A program made the translations under genes and the position numbers. Below are positions 22,805 through 62,680 of a DNA stretch of 64,000 nucleotides, in pieces. The notes beneath the pieces were generated by a model. It saw only the letters and a list, made by a program, of their open reading frames with translations, made no database searches and was not told the DNA's origin. The stretch's first letter is position 1, and each line of letters begins with the position of its first letter. The DNA comes from Utricularia gibba (Eukaryota; Plantae; Magnoliophyta), in the NCBI GenBank assembly GCA_002189035.1, contig NEEC01000009.1:1798001-1862000 (forward strand). Reading direction: 5' to 3'.

Positions 22805-23980
22805 ATGGCATCCTCAAGCTTTGTGATTGTCCTTACCCTTCTCCTTTCTGTCATCTTCTTGCCGGCGGCGGCAGGAACCCGTGCAATCGTCCTCCCCACT
22901 GTGAAAGATTCCGCCTCCGGCCTCCACATCGCCCATTTTAACAGCCCTGCCTACCCTATCCTCGTTGATCTCAACGGTCCCTTGTTTTCTGTCACTTGCC
23001 AGAATTCGACTTCACAATTCACTTCTTGCGCCTCCACAGCCTGCGGTCTCGCGGGAGCCAGAAGCTTCTGCCAGAATGGCACACGTACATGCTCTGTCGT
23101 TATTGATAATCCCTTCACTGGAACCAGATCCTCTGGTGAACTCGCGCAAGACGTGATCTCGGTGCTGGTACTCGATCAACATGACCGCTGTTGTGGCCGC
23201 AGAGAGATCACCAATATCCTGTTTGTGTGCGCGCCGCCGTCTCTGTTTCTACCACCTTTCCCCGCCGCCGTCAAAGGAATTGCCGGATTCGGTGATACAC
23301 CAACTGCTTTACCGAAGCAGCTCGCCGCAAGTTTTGGGCTTCCTCCAGAATTCGCCCTGTGCTTGGCTTCCAACGGCGGCAGCGGCGGAGGGATCCTTTT
23401 CGGGAGCATTCCTACCGAACTGAAATTGCACGAATTGATGAACTACGCACCGTTATCCATAGGACAACGAGGCGAATACATGATCCCGGTGACGTCTATC
23501 AACATAAATGATAAGAAAATCCCCTCCGTCGGCCCTTTATCGGCGAAAATAAGCACTACAGCACCGTACCCAATCCTCGAGCATTTCCTATTCACATCCA
23601 TTACCGATTTCTTCGCTGCAGAGCTCGCCGGAGTTCCTCGAAAGTTGCCTCTTCCCCCATTCGGGTTATGCTTCGACTCCAGATTCCTGCCGGCGCGTAT
23701 TCCGGATATAGAGCTAGTACTGAACGGAAATGCTAAATGGGTCGTTCCTGGCGTGGACGCAATAATAAAGATGCGGCCGGAAGTTTCTTGTCTTGGATTC
23801 GTCCATGGTGGTATCGGAAACTCCAGATCGGTAATCCCCGCCGTGACCATCGGAGCATCCCTGTTGGAGGGGAAGCTGCTGCACTTCGATCTTGCAAGAT
23901 CACGAATCGGATTCGCGGCGTCGCGTCTCTCGCAGCCGTTCAATTGCTCGGGCTTCATTTACGGGTCAACTATTCCATGA
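22805..23980 (+). CDS. XEGIP/EDGP/basic 7S globulin-like copy 2, intact and intronless (391 aa)
   Basis: Signal peptide MASSSFVIVL..., LVDLNGP, KISTTAPY in place of the catalytic DTG/DSGT motifs, VSCLGFVHGG, LLHFDLARSRIGF. Confidence 0.9.
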   Translation: MASSSFVIVLTLLLSVIFLPAAAGTRAIVLPTVKDSASGLHIAHFNSPAYPILVDLNGPLFSVTCQNSTSQFTSCASTACGLAGARSFCQNGTRTCSVVIDNPFTGTRSSGELAQDVISVLVLDQHDRCCGRREITNILFVCAPPSLFLPPFPAAVKGIAGFGDTPTALPKQLAASFGLPPEFALCLASNGGSGGGILFGSIPTELKLHELMNYAPLSIGQRGEYMIPVTSININDKKIPSVGPLSAKISTTAPYPILEHFLFTSITDFFAAELAGVPRKLPLPPFGLCFDSRFLPARIPDIELVLNGNAKWVVPGVDAIIKMRPEVSCLGFVHGGIGNSRSVIPAVTIGASLLEGKLLHFDLARSRIGFAASRLSQPFNCSGFIYGSTIP

Positions 23981-31000: not shown

Positions 31001-31231
31001 TTCAAGAAGGATGAAGTTAAGACTGTGGGTGTTCAGGCACTGGACCTCCGGTTGCCCTTCGGAGAAATCCAGGTTCTTTCCGAAAACGTAGAACTGATTG
31101 CACGGCAGTTGGGGCTGGACCGTGTTGAGGTTCTGTCCGCCGCCGACGCCGTCTCTCGGGCAGGACAGCATGCCTCCGTCCTGAACACCAATCCGCCATC
31201 TCCGGGAAATCCAACAGCAATCTTCTTCTGA
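28013..31231 (+). CDS. LARS: Cytosolic leucyl-tRNA synthetase, intronless CDS (1072 aa)
   Basis: PYMNGYLHLGH (HIGH), KMSKS, editing-domain ATLRPET and GTGIVTSVPSDSPDD, SGKDLIQNHL. Confidence 0.97.
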   Translation: MAEGGERSFARRDRLLSIESQAQKLWSENGVFESESRNTPPKSGEKFFGNFPFPYMNGYLHLGHAFSLSKLEFAAAYHRLRGANVLLPFGFHCTGMPIKASSDRLTREIENDGNPPEAEGKVETQIEGDQTQPPGSYKSKKSKAVAKSGGVMSQWEIMQSYGLSDEEIVKFTDPYHWLTFFPPLALDDLKAFGLGCDWRRTFITTDMNPYFDSFVRWQMRKLKEKGKIVKDLRYTIYSPLDGQPCADHDRASGEGVIPQEYTLIKMEVISPFPPKLCSLNGKKVYLAAATLRPETMYGQTNCWVLPDGEYGAFEINDTDVFILTKRAARNLAYQNLSRFPYKEPEALFMLTGQDLIGLPLKSPLAFNDIIYTLPMMSVLTDKGTGIVTSVPSDSPDDYMALHDLKAKAPLRAKYGVKDEWVLPFDILPIIHHPEFGDRSAERICIEKKIISQNDREKLDEAKKVIYKGGFYEGTMLVGEFTGMKVQEAKSLIRNQLLDLGLAVVYSEPEKKVVSRSRDECVVALTDQWYITYGETEWKKAAEECLASMNVYSEESRHGFEHTLSWLNQWACSRNFGLGSRIPWDEDFLVESLSDSTIYMAYYTVAHILQKGDMYGVDRSNIKPDQLTDEVWDFLFVGGPYPKSSDISSTVLNNMKQEFEYWYPFDLRVSGKDLIQNHLTFCIYNHTAIFPKHHWPRGFRCNGLIMVNSEKMSKSKGNFKTLRQSIEEFSADATRFALADAGDGMDDANFVFDTANAAILRLTKELTWMEEVISVESSLRQSTPSTYADLVFANEMNIAVQLTEKNYSEYMFREALKSGFYDLQAARDEYRLSCGSGGMNRDLLWRFMDVQTRLIAPICPHYAEHVWRELLRRDGYAVKAGWPEAGNPDFTLKKANTYLQDTIVSMRKLMQKQVTGSKKGKANTSNAQNKPKVGLIFVNEQFDGWKKECLGILQTKFDASTGAFASDAEILSELQKSEVGQSANFKQIQKLCMPFLRFKKDEVKTVGVQALDLRLPFGEIQVLSENVELIARQLGLDRVEVLSAADAVSRAGQHASVLNTNPPSPGNPTAIFF

Positions 31232-37506: not shown

Positions 37507-39160
37507 TCTTCTATCGTGAAAAAGGGCAAGAACAGGGGAGAGGAGAGGGAGGAGCCCAAGCAATGTCACCTACTCAGCTTGCGCTAATGACGATTAAAAC
37601 TCACTTTTTTATAGCAAATCAAGGACCAATAGTTAATTGAAGCGATATTCAGGAGTGATTTATGAGCAATCAAGACATGTTAGCCCCAGAAACGTCACAG
37701 ATTTTGGTGCAAAAAGAAGGGATAGATATATCCTTCCCTTCTTTTAATCAGCAAACTATCCTAAAAGTGACGAGATGCTGATTCCTGACTTCAAAAGTAG
37801 AAACTCTCACAAATGAGCCCCACTACTCAACCCTGGTTAAGTTAAGGAACCCGATACTTGACTATTGAACCTCTGAATCCATGCGTTTTTAGAAACCAAA
37901 CACACAAATGACCTCAAGCAAGCTTGTGTTGTCTACTGCTTCCTGACAGGAATCAACCCTTCAACTCAAGACATCCCAAGCATGCTGCGGTTCTGTTCTT
38001 TTATGAGATGGTGTGTTATTATGTGATGAAACATCCCCAAAGCATAGTCCTGTCCCTTGCTTAAACCATTCAGAAAGAAATCAGGTCCAAATCCATGGAT
38101 TTCAGAAAAACCCTCTTGAGACAGAGGACTGGGTGTGGCTTCTGCTACCCAGTTTCAAACATATCACTCAAATGGATCATCTCTTCACACTCTGGGTAAA
38201 GGGGTGACTAAAGAACAAGCTGCGCGTGAATGGATACAAGTAAAGGAGGATAAGGGGAATAAATGGGCTATCGCCGAAAGCAAAGGGATGGGGGAGGCGT
38301 ACTTTCATCGAAAATATCACATTTTGCAACTTCGCTTTCTTCTTCAGATGCATCAGGCTGCTGCTGGGTGGCTGTGAAGGTGATGCAGACTCAGGGCTTA
38401 CAACCCAGGCCTCAATTACAGCCCAATACAAGGTTATACCGTACAACACGCATAAATATCTGCTTGCTACAAGATTTTAATTATTAAATTTCACTGAAAT
38501 TTTTTATTGATCATTAATTTTTTTATGTTTAAGAATAAAATAACAAAAGTATAAAACCCGAGGCCTTTTTTTCGAAAAATAAATATTTAAACACTTAAAG
38601 ATTGGATGTTTTAAATATATAATATCACATTAATAGAGCGTACATCCTGAAATTGATATACTTAACTATAGTTACAAAAAATTTGAATAATATTTATTCT
38701 ATAAATTTTTTTTAAGAATTTAATAAATTAAATATCCAATTATATTAGATTAATCCATTAAATTATTAATTTATCATATCTATATTAATTAATATAATAT
38801 AATATATTTTATTAATTTAATTTCTATTTGAAACTGTTTTTATTATACTAAAAATATTTAAGAATGCTAAAAAAAACTCAAAAATGATTGTTATTTTTAA
38901 AAAGTTGCAAAAACCTCATTTTTATTTTTGGAAAACAATTTTTGAGAATTATATCAAAAACAGTATTAATATCCTATGAAATACCATGAGCAAACTGTAG
39001 ACTTGGAATTGTAATCCCAGATTTTCATTTTTCAGTTTGAGAGTGTTTTCTTGTTATGTTTAATGTGTTTGAATGAGTTGGTGGTCAATGAATGTTCCAA
39101 ATGTTCATGCGCCAAAAGGACTTGTGCATCGCCACACTTATTCATCCCATAAAAGGAAAA

Positions 39161-39634
39161 CTAGAAGAAGATCCGGTTGCCGTCGCCGTCGCCGTCTCCT
39201 CCGTCAGAAGGAGGATAGTTCCATGTATGGGTTCTGCCCCTCACCCCAAAATCAAGATCATCGGTTAAGTAAAACCCGTCGCTCCTAACAACCCAGTAGC
39301 AGAATCCAGTGGAGCAGTCGGATTTTATGTCGCGGCTGAAGACGTCGAATTCCTGCGAAAAATAGGTAGCCCACCAGAAACGGCAGAAGAACAAAGTGGT
39401 GTCGAAAATGTTTTCGCAGAAGTCCCATTTGTAGCTCTGGCCGACCATCAGATCATGGAACCCGAGATCGTTGTCCCTGGATTCGCATTGAATTTTGAGG
39501 GCATCGGAGTTGGGCGGCAGCTGGTTCAGTATCACCACGTTGTACTTCTTCGTCAGCACGCACCCCCGGGAGCCCTGCAGGGGAGCCATGACCGCCAGGA
39601 GGATGAGGATGAGGAGGAGCTTCATGTCTGCCAT
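39161..39634 (-). CDS. S-protein homologue SPH-A (plant self-incompatibility S1 family), with read-through C-terminal extension
   Basis: Signal peptide MKLLLILILLA, IQCESRDNDLGFH, WDFCEN, TLFFCRFWW, FDVF, CSTGFCYW, DGFY. Confidence 0.88.
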   Translation of the reverse strand: MADMKLLLILILLAVMAPLQGSRGCVLTKKYNVVILNQLPPNSDALKIQCESRDNDLGFHDLMVGQSYKWDFCENIFDTTLFFCRFWWATYFSQEFDVFSRDIKSDCSTGFCYWVVRSDGFYLTDDLDFGVRGRTHTWNYPPSDGGDGDGDGNRIFF

Positions 39635-39729
39635 GAAACCAAGAGGGAGAATTTGGGATGCCTTATATAGGAGTCGCGCATCACCGGATGATGGATTGCA
39701 TGAATTCCAACTCAATGTGATCTGCGTAA

Positions 39730-40034
39730 AACACATTGAATACCTGGAAAAGATCGGCGCCCCACCAGAAATGACAGAAGAACAGAGGGGTATGGAAGTA
39801 GTTGTCGCAGAAATCCCATTTGAAGGCCTGGTTCATCGTCAGATTATGGAACCCCAGATCGTTGTCCCTGGATTGACAATGAAAACTGAGGGGATCGAAG
39901 TCGAGGGGCAGCTGGCTCAGTATCAGCACGGTGTAGCCCTTGGTCGCGACGCACCCGCCGGAGGCCGGCATGGCGCAGTAGGGCGATATGACCGCCAGGA
40001 GGATGAGGATGAGGAGGAGCTTCATGTCTGCCAT
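39730..40034 (-). pseudogene. SPH-B: 3'-truncated copy identical to SPH-G
   Basis: 39730-40071 is base-for-base identical to 46689-47030. The ORF leaves SPH sequence after FQVFNV and stops at 39681. Confidence 0.88.
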
Positions 40035-41158
40035 GAAACCAAGAGGGAGAATTTGGGATGCCTTATATAGGGGTTGTGAGATGAAATGCTTCAAAACTTT
40101 AAAATTATGAAAAATTAGATATTTAAAACGAATAATATCTAGATGACATTAATTTACATAATTATAGGTACAAAACTTGAATGATATTTTTTTCTATAAA
40201 AATGTTAAAAAATTCAATAAATTAAATATCCACTCATATTAGTTTAATCTATTAAATACACCAATTTATGATATCTATATTAATTGATATATGATGGATT
40301 ATGAAATAGGCACATGCTAGGTGGAATAATTATAATACTTACATATAAAATTCATAAAAGAATTGAACATCAAATCAGTATCCATTGTGTGAAATCTATT
40401 TGGGGAGTAGATGATTTATGACAACACATGAAAGAGAATAAGGGTGAGAGGGGTTGACATAGGTAACCGTTTTAACAAAATTTGAAAAGTAGTAAAATTG
40501 TAGTAACTTCATAACATCAGATAGTTGTGTCATTAATACCACATATACAATTGTTGGGCATAGAAAGTAACTAAAACCTATAGAATTTGATCGTCTCCAT
40601 TTCTTCAATAATTAGGGAAGTGTTTGAATGAAAAATTATTCCACTCTCTATACATCATTTTGCAATCATTTTTTTTCTTTAGTGAAATCATATATCTGGT
40701 GACTTTATTCAACTTCGTGATTTTTTCTGTTTCCACATAAAAATCATTGTATTCTTTTATTGATTTCATCCCATGATGATCCCAACATCCAAAAACTATA
40801 AATCTAATACACAAACCGATTTCGTAATTCGAAAATAGGCCATCCTCAATAATCCAATTTTCAACCACAACAATATATTATAAATTATTTTATATTAGTT
40901 TAATATCAATTTAAACACAATTTATATTATACTAACAATATTTAAGAATGCTCCAAAAAAAACCCAAAAGAGAATATTATAAGTATGAGAGAGATAGAGA
41001 TAGAGTTTCTTGTTATGTTTCGTGTGTTTGAATAGTTGGTATTCAAGCAATGTTCATGCGCCGAAATGACTTGTGCATCGCCACACTTATTCATCCCATA
41101 AAATGAAAACTAAAAGAAGATCCGGTCGCCGTCGCCGTCGCCGTCGCCGTCTCCTCCG

Positions 41159-41590
41159 TCAAGGATAGTTCCACGTATGGGTTCTGCTCCCAGACCGAGA
41201 CCCAAAATCAAGATTATTGCTTAAGTAAAACCCGTCGCTCCTAACAACCCAGTAGCAGAATCCAGTGGAACATTCGTATTTTATGCCGCCGTTGAAGACG
41301 TCAAATTCCTGCCAATTATAGGGACCCCACCAGAATCGGCAGAAGAACAAAGTGTTGCCTAACAAGTTGTCGCAGAATTCCCATGTTTAGTTCCGGCCGA
41401 TCGTCACATTATGGAACCCGAGATCGTTGTCCCTGGATTCGCAATGAATTCTGAGGGAATCGGAGTTGGGCGGCAGGTCATTCAGTATCTCCACGCTGTA
41501 CTTCTTCGTCAGCACGCACCCCAGGGAGCCCTGCAGGGAAGCTATCACCGCCAGGAGGATGAGGATGAGGAGGAGCTTCATGTCTGCCAT
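41159..41590 (-). pseudogene. SPH-C with a premature stop (TAC to TAA at 41387-41389)
   Basis: Colinear and in frame with SPH-D; GRNY becomes GRN*. Confidence 0.88.
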
Positions 41591-42752
41591 GGAACCAGGG
41601 GAGGATTTGGGATGCCTTATATAGGAGTTGTGTGATGAGATGGTTCAAAACTAGATACTTTTTTTTCGCAAAAGTAAGCATTTCAAATTATCAAAATTAG
41701 ATATTTAAAATGAACAATATTGAGGTGACATTAATATACATAATTATAGGTACAAAACTTGAATGATATTTTTTCTATAAAAATGTTAAAGAATTCAATA
41801 AATTAAATATCCACTCATATTAGTTTAATATATTAAATACACTATTTTGTGATATCCATATTAATTGATATATGATGGAGTATGAATTCAGTACATGCCA
41901 CGTGGAATGATAATAAGATGGATACACAAACAGTCAGAAGCATGGAACATCAAATTGATACCCATTGGGTGAAGTCCATTTCTAGAGGAGATGATTTCTA
42001 CAACACATGACAAAGAATAGAGATGAGAGGTGTTGAAATAAGATGAGTTACTCATTTCAACAAAACCTGAAAATAATTGAATTGCAGTAATCCCAAAACA
42101 GTCATTGGTTATATTACCACATATACAATTGTTAGACGTAGAAAGTAACTGATATCTGTAAAATTCAATCAATCTCGAATTCTCTGATAAATAGAAAATC
42201 ATTTGGAGTAAAAATGATTACACCCTATATACATTATTTTGTAACCTTTTTTTATTCTCTTTATTGAAACCATATATACGGTAAGTCACTTCAGTTCCGT
42301 GGTTTTTTCTATTTCATCGGTTTACATGTAAAAATCATTATATTCTTTTATTGCTTTCATCCCAACAATGATCCCAACACTTGAAAACAATAAATCAGAT
42401 ACACATTAACTGATTTTGTAATCCTAAAATCGGCCATCCTCTATAATCTGATTTTCTACTGCAATAATATATTATAAATTATTTTATATTAGTTTAATAT
42501 CAATTTAAACACAATTTATATTATACTAAAAATATTTAAGAATGTTTCAAAAAAAAGCCCAAAAGTGAATATTATTTTTAAGTATGAGAAAGATAGATAT
42601 AGAGTTTCTTGTTATGTTTAATGTGTTTGAATGAGTTGGTATTGAAGGAATGTTCCAAAAGTTCATGCCAAAATGACTTGTGCATCGCACACTTATTCAT
42701 CCCATAAAATGAACACTAAAAGAAGATCCGGTCGCCGTCGCCGTCTCCTCCG

Positions 42753-43178
42753 TCAAGGATAGTTCCATATATGGGCTCTGTACCAAGACCCAAAATCAAG
42801 ATTATTGGTTAAGAAAAACCCGTCGTTCCTAACAACCCAGTAGCAGAATCCAGTGGAGCAGTCGGATTTTATGTCGCCGTTGAAGACGTCAAATCTCTGC
42901 CAATTATAGGGACCCCACCAGAAACGGCAGAAGAACAAAGTGTTGCCCAAAAAGTTGTCGCAGAATTCCCATGTGTAGTTCCGGCCGATCGTCACATTAT
43001 GGAACCCGAGATCGTTGTCCCTGGATTCGCAATGAATTCTGAGGGAATCGGAGTTGGGCGGCAGGTCATTCAGTATCTCCACGCTGTACTTCTTCGTCAG
43101 CACGCACCCCCGGGAGCCCTGCAGGGGAGCTATCACCGCCACGAGGATGAGGATGAGGAGGAGCTTCATGTCTGCCAT
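42753..43178 (-). CDS. SPH-D, intact (141 aa)
   Basis: Signal peptide, HCESRDNDLG, FCDN, FFCRFWW, CSTGFCYW, DGFF. Confidence 0.92.
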   Translation of the reverse strand: MADMKLLLILILVAVIAPLQGSRGCVLTKKYSVEILNDLPPNSDSLRIHCESRDNDLGFHNVTIGRNYTWEFCDNFLGNTLFFCRFWWGPYNWQRFDVFNGDIKSDCSTGFCYWVVRNDGFFLTNNLDFGSWYRAHIWNYP

Positions 43179-44301
43179 GGAAACAGGGGGGAGGATTTGG
43201 GGTGCCTTATATAGGAGTTTGAGATGAGATGGTTCAAAACTAGATACTTGTTTTTCGAAAAAGTAAGCACTTCAAATTATCAAAATTACATATTTAAAAC
43301 CTACAATATCGAGGTGACATTAATATACATAATTATAGTTACAAAACTTGAATGATATTTTTTCTAGAAAAATGTTAAAGAATTCAATAAATTAAATATC
43401 CACCCATATTAGTTTAATCTATTAAATACACTATTTTATGATATCATATAAGATGGATACACAAATTGACAGAAGAATTGAACACCAAATTGGTACCCAT
43501 TGGATGAAATGGGTTTAGGGAGGAGATGATTTATGACAACACATGACAAAGAATAGGGTTGACAGGGGATTAAATAGGACAGAGTTAGCTGTTTCAATAA
43601 AACCTGAAAAGTACCCCAATTGCATGAACCTCAAGACATCCATCGATTATGTGTCAACAGTACTACATGCATAATCAGAGGATGTAAAAATTAGTTGACA
43701 CCCATAGAATTCAATCAGCTCGATTTCTTCAATAAATAGAAAAATGTTTGAAGTAAAAATTATTCTACTCTCTATACATCATTTTGTAACCCTTATTTAA
43801 TTCTCTTTAATAAAACCATATCTCCAGTAAATCCCTCCAATTCCATGGTTTTTTTCCGTTCCATTGGTTTCCACATAAAAATCATTATATTCTTTTATTG
43901 CTTTCATCCTCATGACGATCCCAACATCCAAAAACTATAAATCTAATACACAAACCGATTTCGTAATCCAAAAATAGGCCATCCTCAATAATCCCATTTT
44001 CAACCACAACAATATATTCTAAATTATTTTATATTAGTTTAATATCAATTTAAACACAATTTATATTATAATAAAATATTTAAGAATGTTCCAAAAAAAC
44101 CCAAAAAGAGAATATTATTTTTCACAATGAGAGAGAGATAGAGATTTTATTATTATGTTTAGTGTGTTTGAATAGTTGGTGTTCAAGGAATGTTCCAAAT
44201 GTTCATCGGCAAAAATGACTTGTACATCGCCACACTTATTCATCCCATAAAATGAAAACTAAAAGAAGATCCGGTCGCCGTCGCCGTCGCCGTCTCCTCC
44301 G

Positions 44302-44724
44302 TCAGGGATAGTTCCATAGATAGCGTTTGTCCCAATACCCATAATCAAGTTTATTGGTGAAGTAAAACCCGTCGCCCTTAACAACCCAGTAGCAGAATCC
44401 AGTGGAGCAGTCGGATTTTACGCCGCCGTTGAAGACGTCGAATTTCTGCCAATGATAGGGATCCCACCAGAAACGGCAGAAGAACAAAGTGTTACCCAAA
44501 ATGTTGTCGCAGAATTCCCATTGGTAGCTCTGGCCGATCGTCAGATTATGGAACCCGAGATCGTTGTCCTTGGATTCGCAATGAATTCTGAGGGTATCGG
44601 CGTTGGGCAGGTCGTTCACTATCTCCACGCTGTACTTCTTCGTCAGCACGCACCCCAGGGAGCCCTGCAGGGGAGCTATCGCCGCCACGAGGATGAGGAT
44701 GAGGAGGAGCTTCATGTCTGCCAT
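44302..44724 (-). CDS. SPH-E, intact (140 aa)
   Basis: Signal peptide, HCESKDNDLG, FCDN, FFCRFWW, CSTGFCYW, DGFY. Confidence 0.92.
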   Translation of the reverse strand: MADMKLLLILILVAAIAPLQGSLGCVLTKKYSVEIVNDLPNADTLRIHCESKDNDLGFHNLTIGQSYQWEFCDNILGNTLFFCRFWWDPYHWQKFDVFNGGVKSDCSTGFCYWVVKGDGFYFTNKLDYGYWDKRYLWNYP

Positions 44725-45262
44725 GGAACCAGGGGGAGGATTTGAGGTGCCTTATATAGGAGTTTGAGATGAGATGGTTCAAAACTAGATACTTTTTTTT
44801 TCGCAAAAATAAGAATTTGAAATTATCAAAATTATATATTTAAAACGAACAATATGGAAGTGACATTAATATATATAATTATAGTTACAAAAGTCAAATA
44901 ATATTTATTCAATAAATTAAATATTCACTCATAATTAGTTTAATCTATTAAATACACCAATTTATGATATCTATATTAATTTATCTATTATAAATTATAT
45001 TTTTATTAGTGTCATATCAATTTAAACACAATTTATGTTATACTACAAATATTTATGAATGCTCCAAAAAACCCAAAAGCGAATATTATTTTTCAGAATG
45101 AGAGAGAGATAGAGTTTAGGGTTTAGTGTGTTAACTTTGAAGAGTTTGTTCAAGGAATGTTCCAAATGTTCATGCGCCAAAAGGACTCGTGCATCGCCAC
45201 ACTTATTCATAACATAAAATGAAAACTAGAAGAAGATCCAGTCGCCGTCTTCTCCGTCAGGC

Positions 45263-45676
45263 CTAGTTCCATGTATAGCGTTTGTCCAAATACCCAACAT
45301 CAACATCATTGGTTATGTAAAACCCGTCGCTCTGAACAACCCAGTTGCAGACTCCAGTGGGGCACTTGGATTCTATCGCGTGGCTGAAGACGTCGAATTC
45401 CTGCCAGTGCTGTGCCCCCCACCAGAAATGGCAGAAGAACAAAGTGGTGTCGAAATAGTTGTCGCAGAAATTCCACTTGTAGCTCTGGTCTATCTTCAGA
45501 TAATGTAACCCGAGATCGTTGTCCTTGGATTGGCAATGAATTCTGAGGTCATCGGAGTCGGGCAGCAGCTGGTTCAGTATCACCACGCTGTATTTCTGCG
45601 TCAGCACGCACCCCCGGGAGGCCTGCAGGGGCGCTATGATCGCCAGGAGGATGAGGAGGAGCTTCACGTCTGCCAT
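45263..45676 (-). CDS. SPH-F, intact (137 aa)
   Basis: Signal peptide, HCQSKDNDLG, FCDN, FFCHFWW, CPTGVCNW, DGFY. Confidence 0.92.
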   Translation of the reverse strand: MADVKLLLILLAIIAPLQASRGCVLTQKYSVVILNQLLPDSDDLRIHCQSKDNDLGLHYLKIDQSYKWNFCDNYFDTTLFFCHFWWGAQHWQEFDVFSHAIESKCPTGVCNWVVQSDGFYITNDVDVGYLDKRYTWN

Positions 45677-46564
45677 GAAACCAAGGGGAGAACTTGGGGG
45701 TGCCTTATATAGGAGCTGTGAGGGCTCATGAATTCGAATTGAATGATAAAATGTTGATTTTGGGTGCGGGATTCAAGGCCTTGTAGTGAATGTGGTCAGT
45801 CAAAAGGTGCCTCTAGGGATAACTTAATGATGGTAACTATTAATTTCACAAATGTGGGAGTAGGTGAAAAAGTAATTTATTTGAATTATGTATATTTAAA
45901 TAAATAAAGAGAAAAAAATCAAAATTGCAAAAAAGGTAATTTAAGTTGTCCAAACTTTGATAATTTTTAAAATTTTTAAAAAATGAAATGATTCATAGTT
46001 TCGTGAAACAATTCTAGTTTCAAATTTAACAATTTTTTTTATTCAAACTTTTTACATTTGCATATGAAGTTATATAAATCAAATGATACTTCTGTTAAGG
46101 TTATACCACATTTGTATCTCGTATGATTCGAATTGACGATGGTTATATTACATTTATGTCTCATATGATTCAAAATAATGATGATTATATTGTGTCTCGT
46201 ATGATGTAACGTTATAACGACGTTTTAGAGTCAAAATCAATTAATTTTGATAATATAATAAGTTAAATATGCAATTTCATAAGTTCAGGTGGAAATTATT
46301 TACAAAAACACATATAATGTAACTTTGAAACTCTAAGTTGGATGCCCAATAAATATTGTTTTCATTGAATAATTAACAAGAATACAAAACCCTATATTTG
46401 TAGGAATTAGGGAATGAGATGAGAGTTTCATGAGAATGGAATATTCCAATGGCTGATGTTGGTGTTTCTTTAGGAATCATGGTTGATAGATATGGAATAG
46501 GGGACAGGAAAAACTTGCTTATTTCAAGAAAAAAAGTAGAAGACACCCCACCCCGTCTACTCCC

Positions 46565-46993
46565 TCAGTTCCATCCATACTCTTTGGTCCACATCCCATG
46601 GGCATAATCATCAGTGAAGTAAAACCCGTCAGTCCTTGCAACCCAGAAGCAGGTTCCAGTGGAGCATCGGGAACCTATCCTCTGGTTGAACACATTGAAT
46701 ACCTGGAAAAGATCGGCGCCCCACCAGAAATGACAGAAGAACAGAGGGGTATGGAAGTAGTTGTCGCAGAAATCCCATTTGAAGGCCTGGTTCATCGTCA
46801 GATTATGGAACCCCAGATCGTTGTCCCTGGATTGACAATGAAAACTGAGGGGATCGAAGTCGAGGGGCAGCTGGCTCAGTATCAGCACGGTGTAGCCCTT
46901 GGTCGCGACGCACCCGCCGGAGGCCGGCATGGCGCAGTAGGGCGATATGACCGCCAGGAGGATGAGGATGAGGAGGAGCTTCATGTCTGCCAT
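46565..46993 (-). CDS. SPH-G, intact (142 aa)
   Basis: Signal peptide, HCQSRDNDLG, FCDN, FFCHFWW, CSTGTCFW, DGFY. Confidence 0.92.
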   Translation of the reverse strand: MADMKLLLILILLAVISPYCAMPASGGCVATKGYTVLILSQLPLDFDPLSFHCQSRDNDLGFHNLTMNQAFKWDFCDNYFHTPLFFCHFWWGADLFQVFNVFNQRIGSRCSTGTCFWVARTDGFYFTDDYAHGMWTKEYGWN

Positions 46994-47691
46994 GAAACCA
47001 AGAGGGAGAATTTGGGATGCCTTATATAGGAGTCGCGCATCACCGGATGATGGATTGCATGAATTCCAACTCAATGTGATCTGCGTAATAAAATGTTGAT
47101 TTTGGGTGCGGGATTCAAGGCCTTGTGGTGAATGTGGTCAGTCAAAAGGTGCCTCTAGGGATAACTTAATGATGGTAACTATTAATTTCACAAAGGTGGG
47201 AGTAGGTGTATTAGTAATTTATTTGAATTATGTATATTTAAATAAAAAATAATATCTTGTTTGATTAAGAAAATTGAAATGGGGCAAAAGTTTTGAACAT
47301 AATTGGAGAAATTATACAAATGTTTAACCTGTGTATTAAATAAATGAGAAAATTATAATATGATTTAAAATGAAAATATTATGATTTGGAAAATAACGGT
47401 TATATCACATTCATATGATTCAAAATAACGATAGTTATATTGTGTCTTGTATAATATACTATTATAATGATGTTAGAGTCAAAATAAGTTAGTTTTAGTA
47501 ACATGAGACGTCAAATATATAATCTCATAAATTTAAGCATAAAATGTTTGTTTATAACAAAAACAAGTTGAGGAATTTACAAAGTAATTTTAAAATTTAA
47601 GGAATATTTATAAGAATTAGGGAAATGATCCGCAAAAGGATGAGATTAGAGTTTCAGTGAATGGAATATTCCATTGGTGTTTCTTTAGGAA

Positions 47692-48198
47692 TCATAGTTG
47701 GCATGGAATAGTAAACTGGAAAAACTTCCTTATTTCAAGAACAAAACTATAAGACACCCCCCGTCTCCTCCCTCGGTTCCATCCATACTCTCTGCTCCAC
47801 GCCCCAGAGGCCATATCATCGGTGAAGTAAAACCCGTCAATGCTTACAATCCAGTTGCAGACTCCAGTGGAGAAGCATCGGGAACCTATCCTCCGGTTGA
47901 AGACATCGAATACCTGGGAACGATCGGCGCCCCACCAGAAATGACAGAAGAACAGAGTGGTGTGGAAGTAGTTGTCGCAGAACTCCCATTGGTAGCCCAC
48001 GTTCAACGTCAGATTATGGTACCCGAGATCGTTGTCCTTGGATTGGCAATGAACTCTGAGGGAATCGGTGCTGAGGGGCAGCTGGCTCAGTATCTCCACG
48101 GTGTAGCCCTTGGTCGCAACGCACCCGCCGGAGACCTGCAGGGCGCAGTAGGGCGCCATGGCCGCCAGGAGGATGAGGAGGAGCTTCATGTCTGCCAT
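47692..48198 (-). CDS. SPH-H with stop-loss extension (168 aa)
   Basis: Full SPH motifs; the codon matching SPH-G's TGA is CGA (47773-47775). Confidence 0.88.
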   Translation of the reverse strand: MADMKLLLILLAAMAPYCALQVSGGCVATKGYTVEILSQLPLSTDSLRVHCQSKDNDLGYHNLTLNVGYQWEFCDNYFHTTLFFCHFWWGADRSQVFDVFNRRIGSRCFSTGVCNWIVSIDGFYFTDDMASGAWSREYGWNRGRRRGVSYSFVLEIRKFFQFTIPCQL

Positions 48199-49157
48199 GG
48201 AACAAAGGGAGAGGAATTGGGAGTGCGTTATATAGGAGTTGTGAGGTGATGATGGATTGCAGGAACTCCAACTGAATGTGATCTGCGTAATAAAATGTTG
48301 ATTTTGGGTGCGGGATTCAAGGCCTTGTGGTGATTTTATATGGTAAGTGAAAGGGTAGGTGCCTCTAGGGATAAGTGAATGATGGTAACTTCTAATTTCA
48401 TAAAGGTGGGAGCAGGTGTATTAGTAATTTATGTGAATTACTTGTATCTAGATAAGCAAATGCCATATGCTTAAAGTTAAAAAAACAATAGATTTTACGA
48501 ATATATGATTAAAGAAATATCATATTGGATATTAATTAAAAAAAATCAAGCCTTGTTTGATTAAGAAAATTGATATGTAACAAGAGTTTTGAAGGACATG
48601 ATTGGAGAAATTATACAAATGTTTGACACGTGTAGTAAATAAATATAGTTTTCATGGAAAAAGAAACAATACTAAAAAAAACATCTTTTTGGGAATGTGA
48701 TAATATGGGTATTAAAAAGGGGTCTTTTATAAAAATGATCATCTTCCTTTTATCTCATATACTAAATTTTTACATGTGGTCATTTTTATCACACACATAC
48801 AGTAGCTACTTTTTAATACATCCCATTAAAGAGTGACCAAAAATAATATCAATACATTTTGGCGTTGCTTGCACTGTGGTGCTGTTCATGTGCATGAGGC
48901 TGCTGGCTGGCTGCTGTTAGAACAATGCAGACTCAGCGTTTTACAACACAGGGCTTCAAGATATTAGTTACTACAAAACCATGTATTTGTATGAATTAGG
49001 GAAATGATCTGCAAGAGGATGAAATGAGAGTTCATGTTCATGGAAATTCCACTGGCTGATGTGGTGTTTCTTTAGGAATCACAGTAGACATGGAATAAGA
49101 AACTGGACAAACTTCCTTATTACAAGAACAAAACTAGAAGACTCCTCGTCTCCTCCC

Positions 49158-49583
49158 TCAGTTCCATGCATAGACTCTGGTCCACGTCCCATGAGCAAAA
49201 TCATTGGTGAAGTAAAACCCGTCACTCTTCGCAACCCAGTAGCAGGATTCAGTGGGGGCGCATTGGGGACTTATCCTGTGGTTGAAGACGTCGAATGCCT
49301 GGGAATGATCGGCGCCCCACCAGAAATGGCAGAAGTACAGAGTGGTGTGGAGGTAGTTGTCGCAGAAGTCCCATTTGTAGCCCTCGTCCATCGTCAGATT
49401 ATGGAACCCCAAATCGGTGTCCTTGGATTGGCAGTGAAATAAGAGGTCATCGGAGTTGAGCGGCAGCTGGCTCACTATCTCCACGCTGTAGCCCTGCGTC
49501 AGCACGCACCCGCCGGAGGCCTGCATGACGCAGTAAGGTGCTATGATCGCCAGGAAGATGAGGAGGAGCTTCATGTCCGCCAT
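49158..49583 (-). CDS. SPH-I, intact (141 aa)
   Basis: Signal peptide, HCQSKDTDLG, FCDN, YFCHFWW, CAPTESCYW, DGFY. Confidence 0.92.
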   Translation of the reverse strand: MADMKLLLIFLAIIAPYCVMQASGGCVLTQGYSVEIVSQLPLNSDDLLFHCQSKDTDLGFHNLTMDEGYKWDFCDNYLHTTLYFCHFWWGADHSQAFDVFNHRISPQCAPTESCYWVAKSDGFYFTNDFAHGTWTRVYAWN

Positions 49584-49929
49584 GGAACCAAGGGGAGAAC
49601 TGGGGTTCCTTATATAGGGGTTTGTGAGATGAGATGGTTCACCGGATTCTTCCCCAGATTGCTCCTCCTGATGAATTGCATGAATTCCAACTGAATGTGA
49701 TCTGCGTAATAAAATTTTGATTTTGGTCGCGGAATTTAAGTCAAAAGATGCTTGTTACGAAAAATTTAATTACGGGTTAGTGTTGATACTATAATTTAAT
49801 TAAAATATATTTAAATTATTTATATTTGGATAAGCATGAGGTACTTATGATATATTTAGTGATTAATATGGGGCATTAAAGAGTGGCTCAAATAATTTTA
49901 TTTCTGGATGGAGGCGCCCAAGGCGTTGG

Positions 49930-50090
49930 AGTGAATGGGATTCGGTTTCAGAAATGCTTCCTGATGCAGTGGTTGACGCTGAGGTTATGGAACCGGAGGC
50001 GCAGATGGTCGGAGTTCTGAGCAGCTGATGCTAGGGTTGCAGGACGGAGGAGGAGGCCGAGAGGGCTAGCAGAAGGATGAGGAGCTTCAT
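49930..50090 (-). pseudogene. Degenerate SPH 5' relic
   Basis: ATG AAG CTC CTC ATC signal peptide (MKLLILLLALS) then a stop; remnants DHLRL and FHNLS in a shifted frame. Confidence 0.6.
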
Positions 50091-50449
50091 GGATGGGGAT
50101 GGCACTGAGCTACGACAGTTGCTCACATTTTGTGGCATCCATTGGACTCTTCTGTGCGACTTTTCATGTAGTGTGTTGGGGTTGGAATTATGGGATTCCA
50201 ATATTTCACCAAGAACTGCATAAAGAAAAAAAAAACCCAGGCACTGTGACAGGCCTCACAATTCTTACATTTTTTTGCACTTCAAGATGATTTATTTAGT
50301 TGTAAGCAGAATGTTCCGTACTCCCACATTCTTATCATACCACAAATCGGAAACCAAGATAATGAAATAGCAATTTATCAGATACTGGGACTGCTCATCA
50401 AGTTCCAACTTTTATTTTTCTTGAATCGCTACCTTGGATTTCAAAAACC

Positions 50450-50926
50450 CTAGAGTTGAACCTCAGGAGCAAGAGCAGGAGCCTGATCAGGAATGGGTTC
50501 CCAGTTGAACTGCTTCACTGCAGGCCTCAACATGTTTCGAGTGAAGTAGATGCCGTCTGCCCTGGCGATCCAGTTGCAAACATGGTCCTTCCTGCACATG
50601 TCCGCATTTCGCGATGTGAAGGCATCGAAGCTTTTGGTGTACTCCGGCTCCCACCAAAGATGACAAAAGAAGAGCGTTCGCGCGAAAACATCATCGCAGA
50701 ACTTCCATGCGAACACAGGGTTACTACTCGTAGTAAGGTTATGATAACCTAGGTCGTTGTCCTTGGAGGCGCAGTGAATCTTTAGTTTATCAGATCCCGA
50801 AGGAAGCTGGTTGATGATTCTGACGGTGTATTCGAAGGTCCAGAAGCAGTTGCCGGCGTCGCAATGCAGAAAAAAGAGAGGCGATCCCGCGACGAGGAGG
50901 AAGAAGAACAGACTGGTGGTCTTCAT
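50450..50926 (-). CDS. SPH-J (subgroup II), intact with Pro/Ala-rich tail
   Basis: MKTTSLFFFLL signal, HCASKDNDLGYH, FCDD, FFCHLWW, CRKDHVCNW, DGIYF. The real ATG is at 50926; the ORF-track start at 50959 is TTG. Confidence 0.92.
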   Translation of the reverse strand: MKTTSLFFFLLVAGSPLFFLHCDAGNCFWTFEYTVRIINQLPSGSDKLKIHCASKDNDLGYHNLTTSSNPVFAWKFCDDVFARTLFFCHLWWEPEYTKSFDAFTSRNADMCRKDHVCNWIARADGIYFTRNMLRPAVKQFNWEPIPDQAPALAPEVQL

Positions 50927-51976
50927 GTCTGCTTCGAAAGCTTGGTTTCCAACATCCAATGGGCGTGTATTTATATGCGAAAGAGGAACCAGACGTCAGT
51001 TCCCCATTTTAGGGTTTGCATGATATAAATAGTAATTGAGAAACCCTAAGATAGGGTCTTTATTTAGGGTTTAATATAGTGGTATTTTATATTTATTTTT
51101 GGGAGTACAGCATCCAATACATTAGTACATAATTATCTTAGGGTTTAATACTCAATAAGACTGAATTCTGCATTGGAAATGCGTATTAATGGCATTATTC
51201 CACCATAGAAAGGTGGAAAGTTCAAACATTGAACTGGTAATGTGCTACTTAGGGTTTGGAACCCTCTTTGAACCGGTCTCACAACTCCAGTTTAATGCAT
51301 CAATATATGCATTATATTTTTTCCAGTATTTTAAAAACCCTAATAAAACCATTTAAAACCATAAATTTTTTATGATGATAATTGGGTTAAAGTAAAATTA
51401 TTTTAAAATAAAAAATGAATATCAATCAATTTTGATTTAATTATGGTTCAATGATAGTTTGATTCTTTTTTCATAAAAAATGAATGATTCAATCAGTTTA
51501 ATTATGCATATAGTTCACGGTTGTTTTTTAAGATTTAGAGCACTAATATTTTTTTAAACCACTTTGAATCGTGAATTATTTATGTTAACTATTTTCATAA
51601 AAAAATATAATAATAATTCTTTTTTTTAAAAAAAAAAGAATGATTCAGTTAAAATGTGGATCGTGGTTGGACTGTTCAAACCACGAGTTATTTACACAAA
51701 TGGCTCACGTTTTTTTTTTTTTTGAAATTTTAAAAAAAATGACTAAAAATATTCGAAGAAAGAATTTGGCCAAGATCTTGTATTGGGACAACTTAGGTAG
51801 GTTATGTCGAAAATGGAAGCAGCACAAGCACTTCTGACTTCTGAGTCGAAATGTCTGTGAGAAGGGCACCCAACTGTCCAAATAGTATCGTGAATCAAAT
51901 ACTATTATTATACATTGCTGTGTCCCTATAAGCCCTAAAGCATTTTCGGAGTCACTGGTTCCGATCTGTGTCTGCT

Positions 51977-52438
51977 TCACATGTCCGGAGAAGGAGGAGG
52001 AGGAGTGAGTTCCCACAGGTACGCCCTGACCGCAGGTGTGTTGTGGATATCGCCGGTGAAGAAAATCCCTTCTCTTCTAGCAATCCAGTAGCACGTGGAC
52101 GTCTTGCAGAGGTGCCCGAAGCTCGATCTGAAGGCATCGAACATCTTGCTGTAGTACTCCTCCCACCAGAGATGACAGTAGAAGAGGGTTCTGGAGAAGA
52201 AGTCATCGCAGAAATTCCATTGGAACACTTGGTTTGGCGCAGTGAGGTTATGATATCCCAGATCGTCGTCCTTAGAGGCGCAGTGAACCCTTAGGAAGCT
52301 GAAATCCACAGGGAGCTGGTTGACGATTTGAATGGTGTAATGCGGTGTCAAGGCGCAGGCCCCAGAAAGTCGAAAAAAACCAGGCGATGCCACAAGGAAG
52401 ACCATGAAGAAGAAGCAGAACCCATTGCTGCTCTTCAT
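51977..52438 (-). CDS. SPH-K (subgroup II), intact
   Basis: Signal, HCASKDDDLGYH, FCDD, FYCHLWW, CKTSTCYW, EGIFF, tail TPPPPSPDM. Confidence 0.92.
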   Translation of the reverse strand: MKSSNGFCFFFMVFLVASPGFFRLSGACALTPHYTIQIVNQLPVDFSFLRVHCASKDDDLGYHNLTAPNQVFQWNFCDDFFSRTLFYCHLWWEEYYSKMFDAFRSSFGHLCKTSTCYWIARREGIFFTGDIHNTPAVRAYLWELTPPPPSPDM

Positions 52439-53135
52439 GTTTAGGGTTCCTGGTGGATGATTCCTATTGGGTTCGTATTTATATGTGAAGGGCACAATGT
52501 ACGGCTACATGCGATTTGGGAATTAGGGCAAACTGAATTAGTTAATCGGGACGGTCTAGTCCTATTAGGGCAAACTGAATTATTCAATAATGTTTAATAA
52601 AAATCCACTTCCAAATTGATAATTTTATATTAATAATGATGTAAATTACATTTAATGATTCAAGTTTGCCCAATAGGAGACACTTCATCAAATCAGTTGG
52701 CATTGTATTGTTCTGTTTTAAAAAAGAATTTAATTATTATATGTGGGGCAATAATCATGGTTAATTTACGAATTTAAAGTATATTTATTTATTGATTTAA
52801 CACAAAAAATATGTCACAGTATTTATTTTTATTCGCCCCATTTAATAATTAACGCATTCCTCTTGTATAAATGATAGCTCGCAATGTTTTAAATCGTGAA
52901 AAAAAAAAATCATTAATTATTTGAATAAATGGTTCAATCGTAATTGAATCGTTCATTTTTTTAAAAAAAATAATTTTTATTCAAAATATCAAATTTTAAT
53001 TAAATTTTAGCTGAACTGCATCTTATTCATGATTAAATCATGATTTATTTTTTTCATTTTAAAACGATTTCAATTTAATTCAATCACTATCATAAACGGG
53101 TTGAAATCGATTCAATCGTAAACACATCCATCCCT

Positions 53136-53597
53136 TCAAGGAAGAGGGGCAGGATTAGTAGTGCCATTCTTATCGAGCTGCCATTTATACGTCAAGGTCG
53201 CCGGCGTGTTCCGGAAGTCATCCGTGAAGTGGATGCCATCGGGTCTCACGAGCCACCAGCAAATATTCATCTTGGCGCAGGCGTTCCTCTTCGCGGTCGA
53301 TCGGAAAACATCGAACGCCCTGTTGTAGCGCGGCTCCCACCAGAGGTGGCAGAAGTAGAGTGTCCGGTGGAAAATGTCGTCGCAGAAGTCCCAGTGGAAC
53401 TCCTCGTTCCAAGAGGTGAGGTTATGAAACCCTAGATCGCGGCTCCCGGAGGCGCAATGAACCACCAAGAAGTGGTTGTCCCATGGCAGCTGGTTGATGA
53501 TCCGAACTTCGTATCTGGGGGTGAGGGTGCAGCCGTCGGATGCGACGATCAGGAAGAAGAAGAAGATGAGGAAGCAGGAGAATGGAGTGTTCTTCAT
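53136..53597 (-). CDS. SPH-L (subgroup II), intact
   Basis: Signal, HCASGSRDLGFH, FCDD, YFCHLWW, CAKMNICWW, DGIHF. Confidence 0.92.
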   Translation of the reverse strand: MKNTPFSCFLIFFFFLIVASDGCTLTPRYEVRIINQLPWDNHFLVVHCASGSRDLGFHNLTSWNEEFHWDFCDDIFHRTLYFCHLWWEPRYNRAFDVFRSTAKRNACAKMNICWWLVRPDGIHFTDDFRNTPATLTYKWQLDKNGTTNPAPLP

Positions 53598-54170
53598 GTC
53601 TGGAGCTGCTGATTTTCATGGCGGAGGAGTGGTTTATATACATGGAGTTGAAGTTTGCCGATTTGTAATCGAGGGGCATTGAGTTTAATGCCAAAATGTA
53701 CGGTCACGTCTGATTTGGGAATCTAGGGCAAACTGAATTAGTTACAAGGGACGGTCTAGTCGTACGTTTGACCCAACCATGGGAAATATTCATAAATAAT
53801 TAATAAAGTATTTAAATTACTTATATTTCAATAAATATACGTTATATAATTAAAATTAAAATTAATTTGGTACCTAGGTTTTTAATATATTTTTTAAAAT
53901 AATATTATATATATTTAAAATATTTTTTTTATAAATTATGTTATTTAGCAAAACTCATCTAGAATATGAGTTTTGAAATACCTAGTTCATAGTATTTTAC
54001 TGTAGTCTTGTAAAACATCATGAATTAGTTTACCAAATATAAATTATTATTAATATATAAATATTTTAACAGTAAAACCAAATTATTAAATACCTCCTAA
54101 GTGTTTTTTGACGTCGTTATAATGCACTATTTTTTAAATAAATTTTTTTATCGAAATTAAATAATTATAT

Positions 54171-54208
<38 letters not shown>
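54171..54208. repeat. Compound (AC)n(AT)n microsatellite
   Basis: Read directly from the sequence. Confidence 0.9.
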
Positions 54209-54391
54209 CTTAAATTTTAATTGAGTTAAAAATTTTAAAAATGAAAATTATATGAATTTAAGATATTATATATTAATATTATTCTATTTTAAAAAAGTGT
54301 ATTTTTTTTTATTCTCCCCATTTAATAATTGATCTCACAAGAAAATCAGTTTATTTTCATTCGCCCATTTAATAATTGGAGGCAATTTGTC

Positions 54392-54868
54392 TTATATTAG
54401 GGGCGTTGGAGGAAGACCGGCAGCAGCAGTGCTGGTGCTATTCTTATCCAGCTCCCATGGGTAAACCAAGAAGTCGGGCATGTCCCTGTAGGCATCACTG
54501 AAGTAGATGCCATCTCGTTTCGCAATCCAGTAGCAAGTGTTCTTCAGACTGCAGTCCTTCCTCTTCGCCGTCGACCGGAAAGCGTCGAACGCCCTGTTGT
54601 ACGGCCCCCACCAGAGGTGACAGAAGTGCAGGGTCTTGTGGAAAATGTCGTCGCAGAAGTGCCACCGGAACACCTCGCCCGCATTGGTGAGGTTATGAAA
54701 CCCTAGGTCACGGCTCCCGGAGGCGCAATGAAGTCTCAAGAAGTTGTTGTCCCATGGTAGCTGGTTGATGATCTGAACATCGTATCTGAGGGTGAAGATG
54801 CAGCCCTTGGATGCGACGATGAGGAAGAAGAAGAAGGTGAGGAAGCAGCAGAAGGGGGTGTTCTTCAT
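54392..54868 (-). CDS. SPH-M (subgroup II), intact
   Basis: Signal, HCASGSRDLGFH, FCDD, HFCHLWW, CSLKNTCYW, DGIYF. Confidence 0.92.
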   Translation of the reverse strand: MKNTPFCCFLTFFFFLIVASKGCIFTLRYDVQIINQLPWDNNFLRLHCASGSRDLGFHNLTNAGEVFRWHFCDDIFHKTLHFCHLWWGPYNRAFDAFRSTAKRKDCSLKNTCYWIAKRDGIYFSDAYRDMPDFLVYPWELDKNSTSTAAAGLPPTPLI

Positions 54869-55814
54869 GTCTAGAGCTGCTGGTTTTCACGGCGGAGGAG
54901 TGATTTATATACATGGAGTTGAAGTTTGCCGACTTGTAACAAGGGGCATTGAGCTTAATGCCAAGCTTCATTAATTTCAGTGCTACCACTGCAACTAGGG
55001 ATATGGAAACCTACTGTTATCTCATTTTTCTACCAAATAAACCCTAGCAAAGTAACCTTATTAAAAAAAGGTGTACACACAATAGGAAAGCGAATGGGAT
55101 CAACTCATAGCAGCTTCTGTTTTCGTGCGCAGTCTCTGTATTTGAGGCTTTCATGTTCCATTTTGTTGCTCTCCAGTCTCCACCATCCATGGGGCCTCTA
55201 TATTTTGAAAGTACTGAGGATGTGTAGAAGTTACCCGTTTTGGTTCATCTGAAAACCAAGCAGCGCATGTTAAGATGGAGTTTAGGGTTTGAAATAGGTT
55301 GTCAAGAATGATTATAAGCTAAGGGAGAAGCGTATGAAGTTTTGATGGAATGAAGTCCCACATCGGAGCATTTCTAAGGGTTTCAAATAGGATGTCTAAG
55401 GCTGGCTCCAACACCATGCTGCACTTGTAGCGCGGACCCAGAACACACGTTGGGAGATCAATCAATAACCAGCTATGACTAGTTGATAGACTACGGAGAC
55501 CCATCAGTGCTTGTTGGAGATGGATGCATAGTCGGAAACATGATGGTGTTTTAGTGCCCATATCCCCTTGCTTTCTTGCCGTATGTGTTGCGGGGTAGCC
55601 ATGCTCATTCATCCTTCGCCTCCAATACGAAACTTCCCTATCCGCCACTAATTCCTCAGTCGCTTCAACGAACCAGCAACCGGCGCTCACGACAATCGCA
55701 CTGCCACAAGGTACCGTGTGTCGTGCCACCTTTTCTAAAATACCCATCGAAAATCCTCTTGCCTAGAACCATATCGCCATTGCACCCAATACCAATCGAA
55801 AATCCTCTGGCAGC

Positions 55815-56212
55815 ATGGGGCTGGGCATCGTGTTGGCGATGTTAGCATCCTACCGTGTTTTACAGGCATCGGGTGCCGGGACGAGCTCCTGGTGGGAGTG
55901 CCTTTTCACGCAGGACTCCGACCAGCTGCGACTGCATTGCGCCTCCAAAGAGGACGATCTCGGGTACCATGTTCTGAACCCGGATCAGGTCTTCAAGTGG
56001 CATTTCTGCGTCAACTTCGTTCCCAACACTTTGTTCTTCTGTCATCTTTGGTGGGGGAGAGTCGCTCCAAAGAGTTCGACGTCTTCACCTTCAAGAGAAG
56101 CGACAATTGCGACAGGGGTTACTGTTACTGGATCATCAGAGAAGATGGGATCTATTTCAGTAACAACTATCCCAAGTACGCTGGCTGGAAGATCTTCAAC
56201 TGGGATGCCTAA
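55815..56212 (+). pseudogene. SPH-N, opposite orientation, frameshift at about 56053-56057 and atypical N-terminus
   Basis: Frame A: LRLHCASKEDDLGYHVL...FCVNFVPNTLFFCHLWWG. Frame B: SRSKEFDVFTFKRSDNCDRGYCYWIIREDGIYF. Confidence 0.85.
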
Positions 56213-56468: not shown

Positions 56469-56633
56469 TCAGTTGGTAACAAAACCGTTCCCTTCGGGGT
56501 TGATGTCCATCTTCGCGGCTGGACCGAGTTCACCTGAAATGCAACACCAGTACAAGGAATCGATTTCCAGTAACTTTCAATGCTCCTCACAAGATACACA
56601 AGGTTAAAGTGATAGAATTACAAACCCGTGTGC

Positions 56634-56695
<62 letters not shown>

Positions 56696-62220: not shown

Positions 62221-62680
62221 TATTCAAATTGTCGGGGAATTGTGCAGGGTTTTAGCCCTTAGTTAGGTTGAGGTTGCTGTAACCAAGAGTTGGCAAACTA
62301 GGCCGAAATGGGGTTAATTTGAGGAAGTGATGAAGTGGATGATACTTCACGGTTTCAGCCTATCGTGCTCTCACTTCTCATACGCGGTGGAAAAGCTAAA
62401 GTGGAGTTATTTTCAGCGGGCTTTCAATATCGGAGTCGTGGAGAGTTTGCTGCTGGTGCTTGTTGGTAAAGTTTGGATCTTGGTGAGTTTAATTACTGCG
62501 GTGAAGAGAGCAAGCCCTGTGTTGCTTCTTTCCCGTTTTTTTCATTGGGGGTACATGAAGTGACTGGGGATGCTTTCTGTGATGTGTGCTCAGACGTGAC
62601 AGATATTATGAATGCTACTGAGATACGTGGGTTAACATTCGATTGGTTGAGGTGATACTGCATGGTGGATTAGCTTTTCC

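Follow-up and report, generated by a model that had tools for sequence, protein, structure and literature searches.

S-protein homologues (SPH proteins) form a large plant family of more than 2,000 members across over 70 species. Self-compatible Arabidopsis thaliana alone has more than 100. Their main site of occurrence is floral tissue, and pollen-coat proteomes include 17 of them (PMC9856046). According to a 2026 review, no SPH protein besides poppy PrsS has a known function. PrsS is the stigma S-determinant of Papaver rhoeas, and PrsS-like genes of Papaveraceae are reported to show positive selection at a few sites, including loop 6 (PMC3166141). In Turnera and Passiflora, tandem SPH paralogues are grouped in species-specific clades (PMC9862265). 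Here we describe a tandem array of SPH genes in Utricularia gibba (GenBank assembly GCA_002189035.1, contig NEEC01000009.1, positions 1,798,001 to 1,862,000 of the forward strand). “The window” denotes this whole stretch of 64,000 nucleotides, and positions are counted from its first letter. The array is probably a lineage-specific tandem SPH expansion encoding secreted binding proteins or ligands, in which the C-terminal face of one subgroup (subgroup I) is diversifying against a partner. We assign this reading a probability of roughly 0.65.

Tandem, lineage-specific, pseudogene-rich SPH clusters have already been published, and the array is an ordinary cluster of this kind. Its members resemble the SPH family, and Arabidopsis SPH15 in particular, in giving a full-domain match to the family hidden Markov model (HMM) and in size, putative leader peptide, single-exon genes, predicted beta-sandwich and occurrence in pseudogene-rich tandem clusters, but they are only 17–20% identical to SPH15. 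As in the SPH cluster of Turnera subulata, neighbouring paralogues related by tandem duplication form species-specific clades; TsSPH1 of Turnera, however, moved into a distyly supergene, where its proposed role is in setting filament length, and nothing comparable is seen at the array (PMC9862265). With PrsS the copies share the family and, probably, positive selection that affects a minority of sites, loop 6 included, within a scaffold under constraint (PMC3166141). PrsS differs in being a single multi-allelic gene linked to PrpS, whereas the window has 14 paralogues in one haplotype and no PrpS-like neighbour. Four cysteines are described as conserved in PrsS, whereas six are invariant in the window copies, a pattern common to Lamiales relatives. 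Because such clusters and positive selection in PrsS-like genes have been described before, the array opens no new question by itself. What is added here is a two-regime picture, in which a constrained old subgroup stands beside a young subgroup that is probably diversifying, with the signal in its C-terminal half.

Fourteen SPH loci lie between 39161 and 56212 (17 kb) and none elsewhere in the window (Table 1). Copies were counted by tblastn with six copies as queries, by a protein HMM on six-frame fragments and by a DNA profile, and all three agree on 14. Thirteen are on the minus strand and one (copy N) is on the plus strand, head-to-head with M, as had been counted in an earlier reading of the letters alone (hereafter the sequence-only reading). 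Its assignment of the genes to the SPH family, as homologues of PrsS, also stands: Pfam comparison placed 10 of the 10 intact open reading frames (ORFs) submitted above the gathering cutoff for PF05938 (Self-incomp_S1), at 91–107 bits versus 24, the ESM Atlas neighbours of the array proteins are all S-protein homologues of Streptophyta, and the predicted fold matches that of SPH15. The array is a tandem cluster of SPH genes, and the family assignment is secure. All genes are intronless. ORFs are complete in D, E, F, G, I, J, K, L and M (137–158 aa counted from the first ATG); including the stop-loss copies A and H, lengths range from 137 to 168 aa. These sizes and the nonsense, stop-loss, truncated and chimeric copies listed previously agree with our ORF and alignment analysis. 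An additional relic had been proposed, but protein and DNA profiles detected no fifteenth coding copy in the window and no SPH match below 39161. Only a spacer remnant is present at that edge, 80–81% identical by blastn to 41726–41872 and 42465–42581. Exact-sequence look-ups with nine SPH proteins and the leucyl-tRNA synthetase of the window returned no database record.

The copies form two subgroups, I (A–I) and II (J–M), as had been proposed, with 32–45% identity between them; subgroup I divides further into Ia (A, C, D, E and F) and Ib (G, H and I). A single-sequence word search for relatives gave no match. With a profile of 11 copies, 34 related proteins were retrieved, all of them PF05938 members at no more than 49% identity. 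Nearly all those with names are from Lamiales (Salvia, Erythranthe, Paulownia, Striga, Sesamum, Fraxinus, Phtheirospermum, Rehmannia and Handroanthus). Maximum-likelihood analysis together with these proteins placed the 11 window copies in a single clade (support 95/90), which makes the whole array a lineage-specific expansion as far as the sampled relatives show.

The array has grown by stepwise unequal duplication and lost copies by nonsense, frameshift and deletion. Duplication units are ∼1.2–1.6 kb, whole Ia units align at 80–84%, and stepwise duplication of such units accounts for a physical order that follows the tree (A and C–F, then G–I, then J–M). The lesions, the unit alignments and the stop-loss 3′ ends support the birth-and-death turnover in tandem suggested earlier.

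Sequence still moves between copies, and a tract shared by G and B is an example. Positions 39730–40074 (B) and 46689–47033 (G) are 99.7% identical over 345 bp, corresponding to −40 to +305 of G; B matches G exactly over its first 102 codons and then continues into promoter sequence from upstream of A. Copy A is itself identical to G from about −95 in its promoter through the first ∼70 nt of coding sequence. Comparison of 39588–40074 with 46689–47088 shows that the −95 to −41 segment of G now precedes the TATA box of A, while the original Ia-type promoter of A is found upstream of B. The A–B spacing is 394 bp, versus ∼1550 bp for a normal unit. This arrangement fits insertion of a permuted ∼400-bp piece of G at the common TATA region. 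Alternatively, the 99.7% G-to-B arrangement may be an assembly chimera.

Values for omega, the ratio of nonsynonymous (dN) to synonymous (dS) divergence, were obtained with our own GY94 F3x4 likelihood implementation, whose log likelihood under model M0 equals that of IQ-TREE (−1630.654). Calculations were performed on the mature domain unless otherwise stated, and the subgroup I set comprised 8 sequences and 120 codons. Tests are reported as twice the difference in log likelihood (2dlnL). For subgroup I, omega under M0 was 1.48 (2dlnL 4.0 versus omega = 1), and M2a exceeded M1a by 50.3, with 26% of sites at omega 5.1 and 22% near 0. Subgroup II (J–M), which serves as an internal negative control for the site-model method, gave an omega of 0.24 (2dlnL 60 versus omega = 1) and an M2a versus M1a difference of 5.6, which is not significant. 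Subject to the caveats given below, the older subgroup II is under purifying selection. The rapid evolution that the sequence-only reading ascribed to the locus thus applies to subgroup I and fails for subgroup II.

That reading also held that loops vary while the scaffold is fixed. The proposed comparison of loop and scaffold dN/dS was run and the partition was rejected: within subgroup I, omega was 1.62 in strands (2dlnL 2.6 versus omega = 1) and 1.67 in loops (4.0). The contrast is instead between halves, each analyzed with its own tree. The N-terminal half gave an omega of 0.89 (0.2 versus omega = 1; M2a versus M1a, 2.6) and the C-terminal half 2.25 (9.8; 40.8). Nineteen sites have a posterior above 0.8, and 14 of these fall at residues 91–136, in beta6, loop 6, beta7, loop 8, beta9 and the C-terminus. 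Subclade Ia alone gave an omega of 2.15 (6.6; 33.7), subgroup I minus pseudogene C gave 1.58 (5.0; 45.2), and the subgroup I signal peptide gave 0.63 (0.8 versus omega = 1).

Several observations weigh against the reading given above. The GC content at third codon positions (GC3) is 0.64–0.77 in the copies versus 0.23–0.40 GC in the flanks, and alignable flanks of C, D and E diverge by 0.08–0.14, which is close to dN and greater than the divergence at third positions. The neutral rate may thus be higher than synonymous sites indicate, in which case omega would be inflated. When pairwise dN is divided by flank distances, the N-terminal half evolves at ∼0.5 of neutral and the C-terminal half at ∼1.25, so the excess rests on a subset of fast sites. 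An excess of dN over dS is individually significant only in pairs with A (A–E, P 0.003; A–D, P 0.02), and copy A shows features that may be signs of decay. Gene conversion takes place between array copies, and it can inflate the statistics of site-model tests. In addition, leader peptides were assessed by hydropathy alone, and relatives were sampled via a word index, such that closer outgroups may exist. Because of the flank, GC3, pairwise and gene-conversion caveats, diversifying selection on the C-terminal face of the young subgroup I is rated as likely, not proven.

The same flank and third-position divergences would be expected if subgroup I were simply decaying, with redundant copies drifting neutrally and omega values above 1 produced artificially by lowered synonymous divergence (codon or GC3 bias) together with gene conversion. 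Of the nine copies in subgroup I, two are broken and two others carry stop-loss tails, most pairwise tests fall short of significance, and the Self-incomp_S1 family of Arabidopsis includes 39 pseudogene loci versus 64 ORF members, a ratio of 0.61 (PMC3521719). Neutral drift, however, does not sit well with the 36% of sites that M1a places at omega 0.06, or with the 27 invariant alignment columns, six of them cysteines, that are kept even in pseudogene C. Likewise, M2a is favored over M1a by 50, or by 41 in the C-terminal half with its own tree, while no signal appears when the method is applied to subgroup II. Values for dS are similar in the two halves of subgroup I, so the contrast between halves comes from dN, and a fast-class omega of 5–6 survives a twofold correction. 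We consider it unlikely that decay accounts for the pattern. A membrane-directed role in defence, in which the proteins are effectors acting on the membranes of microbes or herbivores, by binding or perturbing them, and diversify in an arms race, draws on a topology like that of cytolysin domain 4. In the fold comparison, SPH15 is followed by membrane-binding domains of cholesterol-dependent cytolysins (Z 7–8), and defence families typically combine tandem expansion and diversifying selection. By the comparison tool's own guidance, such Z scores are nevertheless within the range of common beta-sandwich arrangements. The literature reports no activity for any SPH, and SPHs have been detected mainly in floral tissue and pollen coat. 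A membrane-directed defence role is improbable.

Family-level homology to PrsS also invites the interpretation that the array is, or lies in, a Papaver-type S-locus, with the SPH copies as female determinants and a linked pollen receptor. The putative positively selected sites include loop 6, which is tied to PrsS specificity (bioRxiv 10.64898/2026.02.10.705222; PMC3166141). Poppy PrpS is in tight linkage with PrsS, and a single cosmid clone carried both genes. Between 36.5 and 64 kb we found no ORF of at least 70 aa with at least two hydrophobic spans, and hence no PrpS-like multi-pass partner between or beside the copies, except for a weak 77-aa ORF at 62330–62563, 6 kb from the array; note that spliced genes could be missed by this search. 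Moreover, the copies are 14 paralogues within one haplotype and not alleles, Papaver-type self-incompatibility has been characterised in Papaveraceae only, and SPH families are large in selfers. The S-locus interpretation, already weakened, is extremely improbable.

In the favored reading, a lineage-specific set of secreted binding proteins or ligands, each intact gene would use its own TATA-box core promoter to express a leader followed by a six-cysteine beta-sandwich of ∼115 residues, which would be secreted. The array extends by unequal duplication of its ∼1.2–1.6 kb units, copies die by nonsense, frameshift and deletion, and tracts are exchanged between copies. Subgroup II would be retained by purifying selection, while subgroup I would retain a buried scaffold and its C-terminal half (beta6, loop 6, beta7, loop 8 and beta9) would change amino acids faster than the synonymous rate. 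The proteins may function extracellularly as binding proteins or ligands, with the fast-changing C-terminal face as the contact surface that diversifies against a partner. This partner may be a pathogen molecule or a receptor that serves reproductive or cell-cell signalling; in this reading the array is not an S-locus. It is by this step that we infer a recognition locus from the two-regime picture. A more specific proposal, that subgroup I consists of young diversifying secreted ligands whose C-terminal face (beta6–beta9, including loop 6) is co-evolving with an unlinked receptor family, is quite unlikely. If true, it would provide a non-poppy case where the evolution of SPH specificity can be read directly from a paralogue series. 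The array is a compact, well-resolved series of this type, and it indicates which surface to mutate or swap in binding assays.

To model the fold, AlphaFold2 was applied to copy E with an 11-sequence alignment. The model is a nine-strand beta-sandwich with a mean pLDDT of only 74.5. Its top match among solved structures is Arabidopsis SPH15 (PDB 6g7g; Foldseek E 1.6e-4, TM 0.67), and a VIA comparison of the two gave Z 9.4 with a root-mean-square deviation of 3.4 over 106 of 115 residues. The array proteins are thus predicted to match the SPH15 beta-sandwich. SPH15 was reached by fold search only; PDB sequence searches with single sequences and with a profile of the window copies did not find it. 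The authors of the SPH15 structure had already remarked on its resemblance to the cytolysin domain.

The six cysteines are invariant in 12 of 12 aligned copies and, depending on position, are present in 23–29 of 29 Lamiales relatives. An NxT sequon within GFHNLT is present in 9 of 11 intact copies. By hydropathy, the leaders have a hydrophobic core (KD10 2.5–3.9 within residues 5–19) followed by small residues and then the first invariant cysteine, and the intact array proteins are presumably secreted.

A TATA box is located 33–49 nt upstream of the ATG in 13 of 13 minus-strand copies and is absent in N, so the claim that every copy carries one is correct for all but the inverted copy. The sequence is TATATAAG in subgroup I, TATAAATA in J and K, and TATATAAA in L and M, against a background of 0.28 per 100 nt per strand. 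In subgroup I, the 40–45 nt from the TATA box to the ATG are similar even where DNA further upstream no longer aligns. In four copies (A, G, I and J) the motif CATGCA, the core of the seed-type RY element, precedes the ATG by 60–95 nt and the TATA box by 25–45 nt. This six-base match could be due to chance.

Individual copies are listed in Table 1. In copy A, alignment of 3′ ends reveals a 5-bp insertion just before the ancestral TGA that shifts the frame, and the resulting tail reads through a (GACGGC)n microsatellite to give GDGDGDG; HC is replaced by QC and the NxT sequon is gone. The nonsense codon of C corresponds to a Tyr codon in D. Copy N has a frameshift near 56055–56063 and its first strand is deleted.

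Table 1. SPH copies and the spacer remnant in the window.
Feature	Position	Strand	Subgroup	Description	Evidence
SPH copy A	39161..39634	minus	Ia	157 aa, SPH-domain ORF open, stop-loss tail	PF05938 E 7e-28
SPH copy B	39681..40034	minus		truncated chimeric pseudogene	translation and alignment
SPH copy C	41162..41590	minus	Ia	pseudogene, in-frame stop at 41387–41389	HMM match split at the stop
SPH copy D	42753..43178	minus	Ia	intact, 141 aa	PF05938 E 2e-28
SPH copy E	44302..44724	minus	Ia	intact, 140 aa, protein modelled	PF05938 E 8e-31
SPH copy F	45263..45676	minus	Ia (basal)	intact, 137 aa	PF05938 E 1.6e-29
SPH copy G	46565..46993	minus	Ib	intact, 142 aa, donor of B fragment	tblastn and alignment
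SPH copy H	47692..48198	minus	Ib	168 aa, TGA>CGA stop loss, 27-aa tail	PF05938 E 3.7e-26
SPH copy I	49158..49583	minus	Ib	intact, 141 aa	PF05938 E 3.3e-27
SPH copy J	50450..50926	minus	II	intact, 158 aa from first ATG	PF05938 E 7e-30
SPH copy K	51977..52438	minus	II	intact, 153 aa from first ATG	PF05938 E 4e-26
SPH copy L	53136..53597	minus	II	intact, 153 aa	PF05938 E 6e-26
SPH copy M	54392..54868	minus	II	intact, 158 aa	PF05938 E 6e-27
SPH copy N	55815..56212	plus		inverted pseudogene	two HMM pieces in different frames
Spacer remnant at array edge	38648..38900	minus	Ia-type unit	without coding part	blastn

The array is flanked by ordinary, densely packed plant genes. These encode a lipoxygenase, a P450, a GATA factor, TAXi-type aspartic proteases, an RRM-CCHC protein, leucyl-tRNA synthetase and pectate lyase, and a histone gene is located on the far side of the array. 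The leucyl-tRNA synthetase gene (28013–31231, plus strand) is one uninterrupted ORF of 1072 aa, which fits a compact, intron-poor genome. Two TAXi-type aspartic-protease-like genes adjoin each other at 21195–23980 (plus strand). The first is split over ORFs at 21195–21812 and 21809–22351, and the second, at 22679–23980, is intact.

Two microsatellites are associated with the array. The (GACGGC)n repeat lies directly after Ia stop codons, at 41125–41151 and in the corresponding 3′ regions of A, D and E, and a (GT)33 repeat occupies 56628–56693 at the array edge, just past copy N. Long antisense ORFs on the plus strand cover most SPH coding sequences (39495–40070, 44452–44745, 46598–47029, 47698–48249, 49059–49442, 50456–50752 and 51968–52294). 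They run in codon-for-codon reverse register, which is closed only by sense TTA, CTA or TCA codons, and with GC3 at 0.64–0.77 there are 0–3 of these per copy. Antisense coding was considered as a cause of low dS and was rejected: besides the way in which the register is closed, second positions vary as much as first positions, and for this reason the antisense ORFs appear to result from codon usage rather than to represent a second gene.

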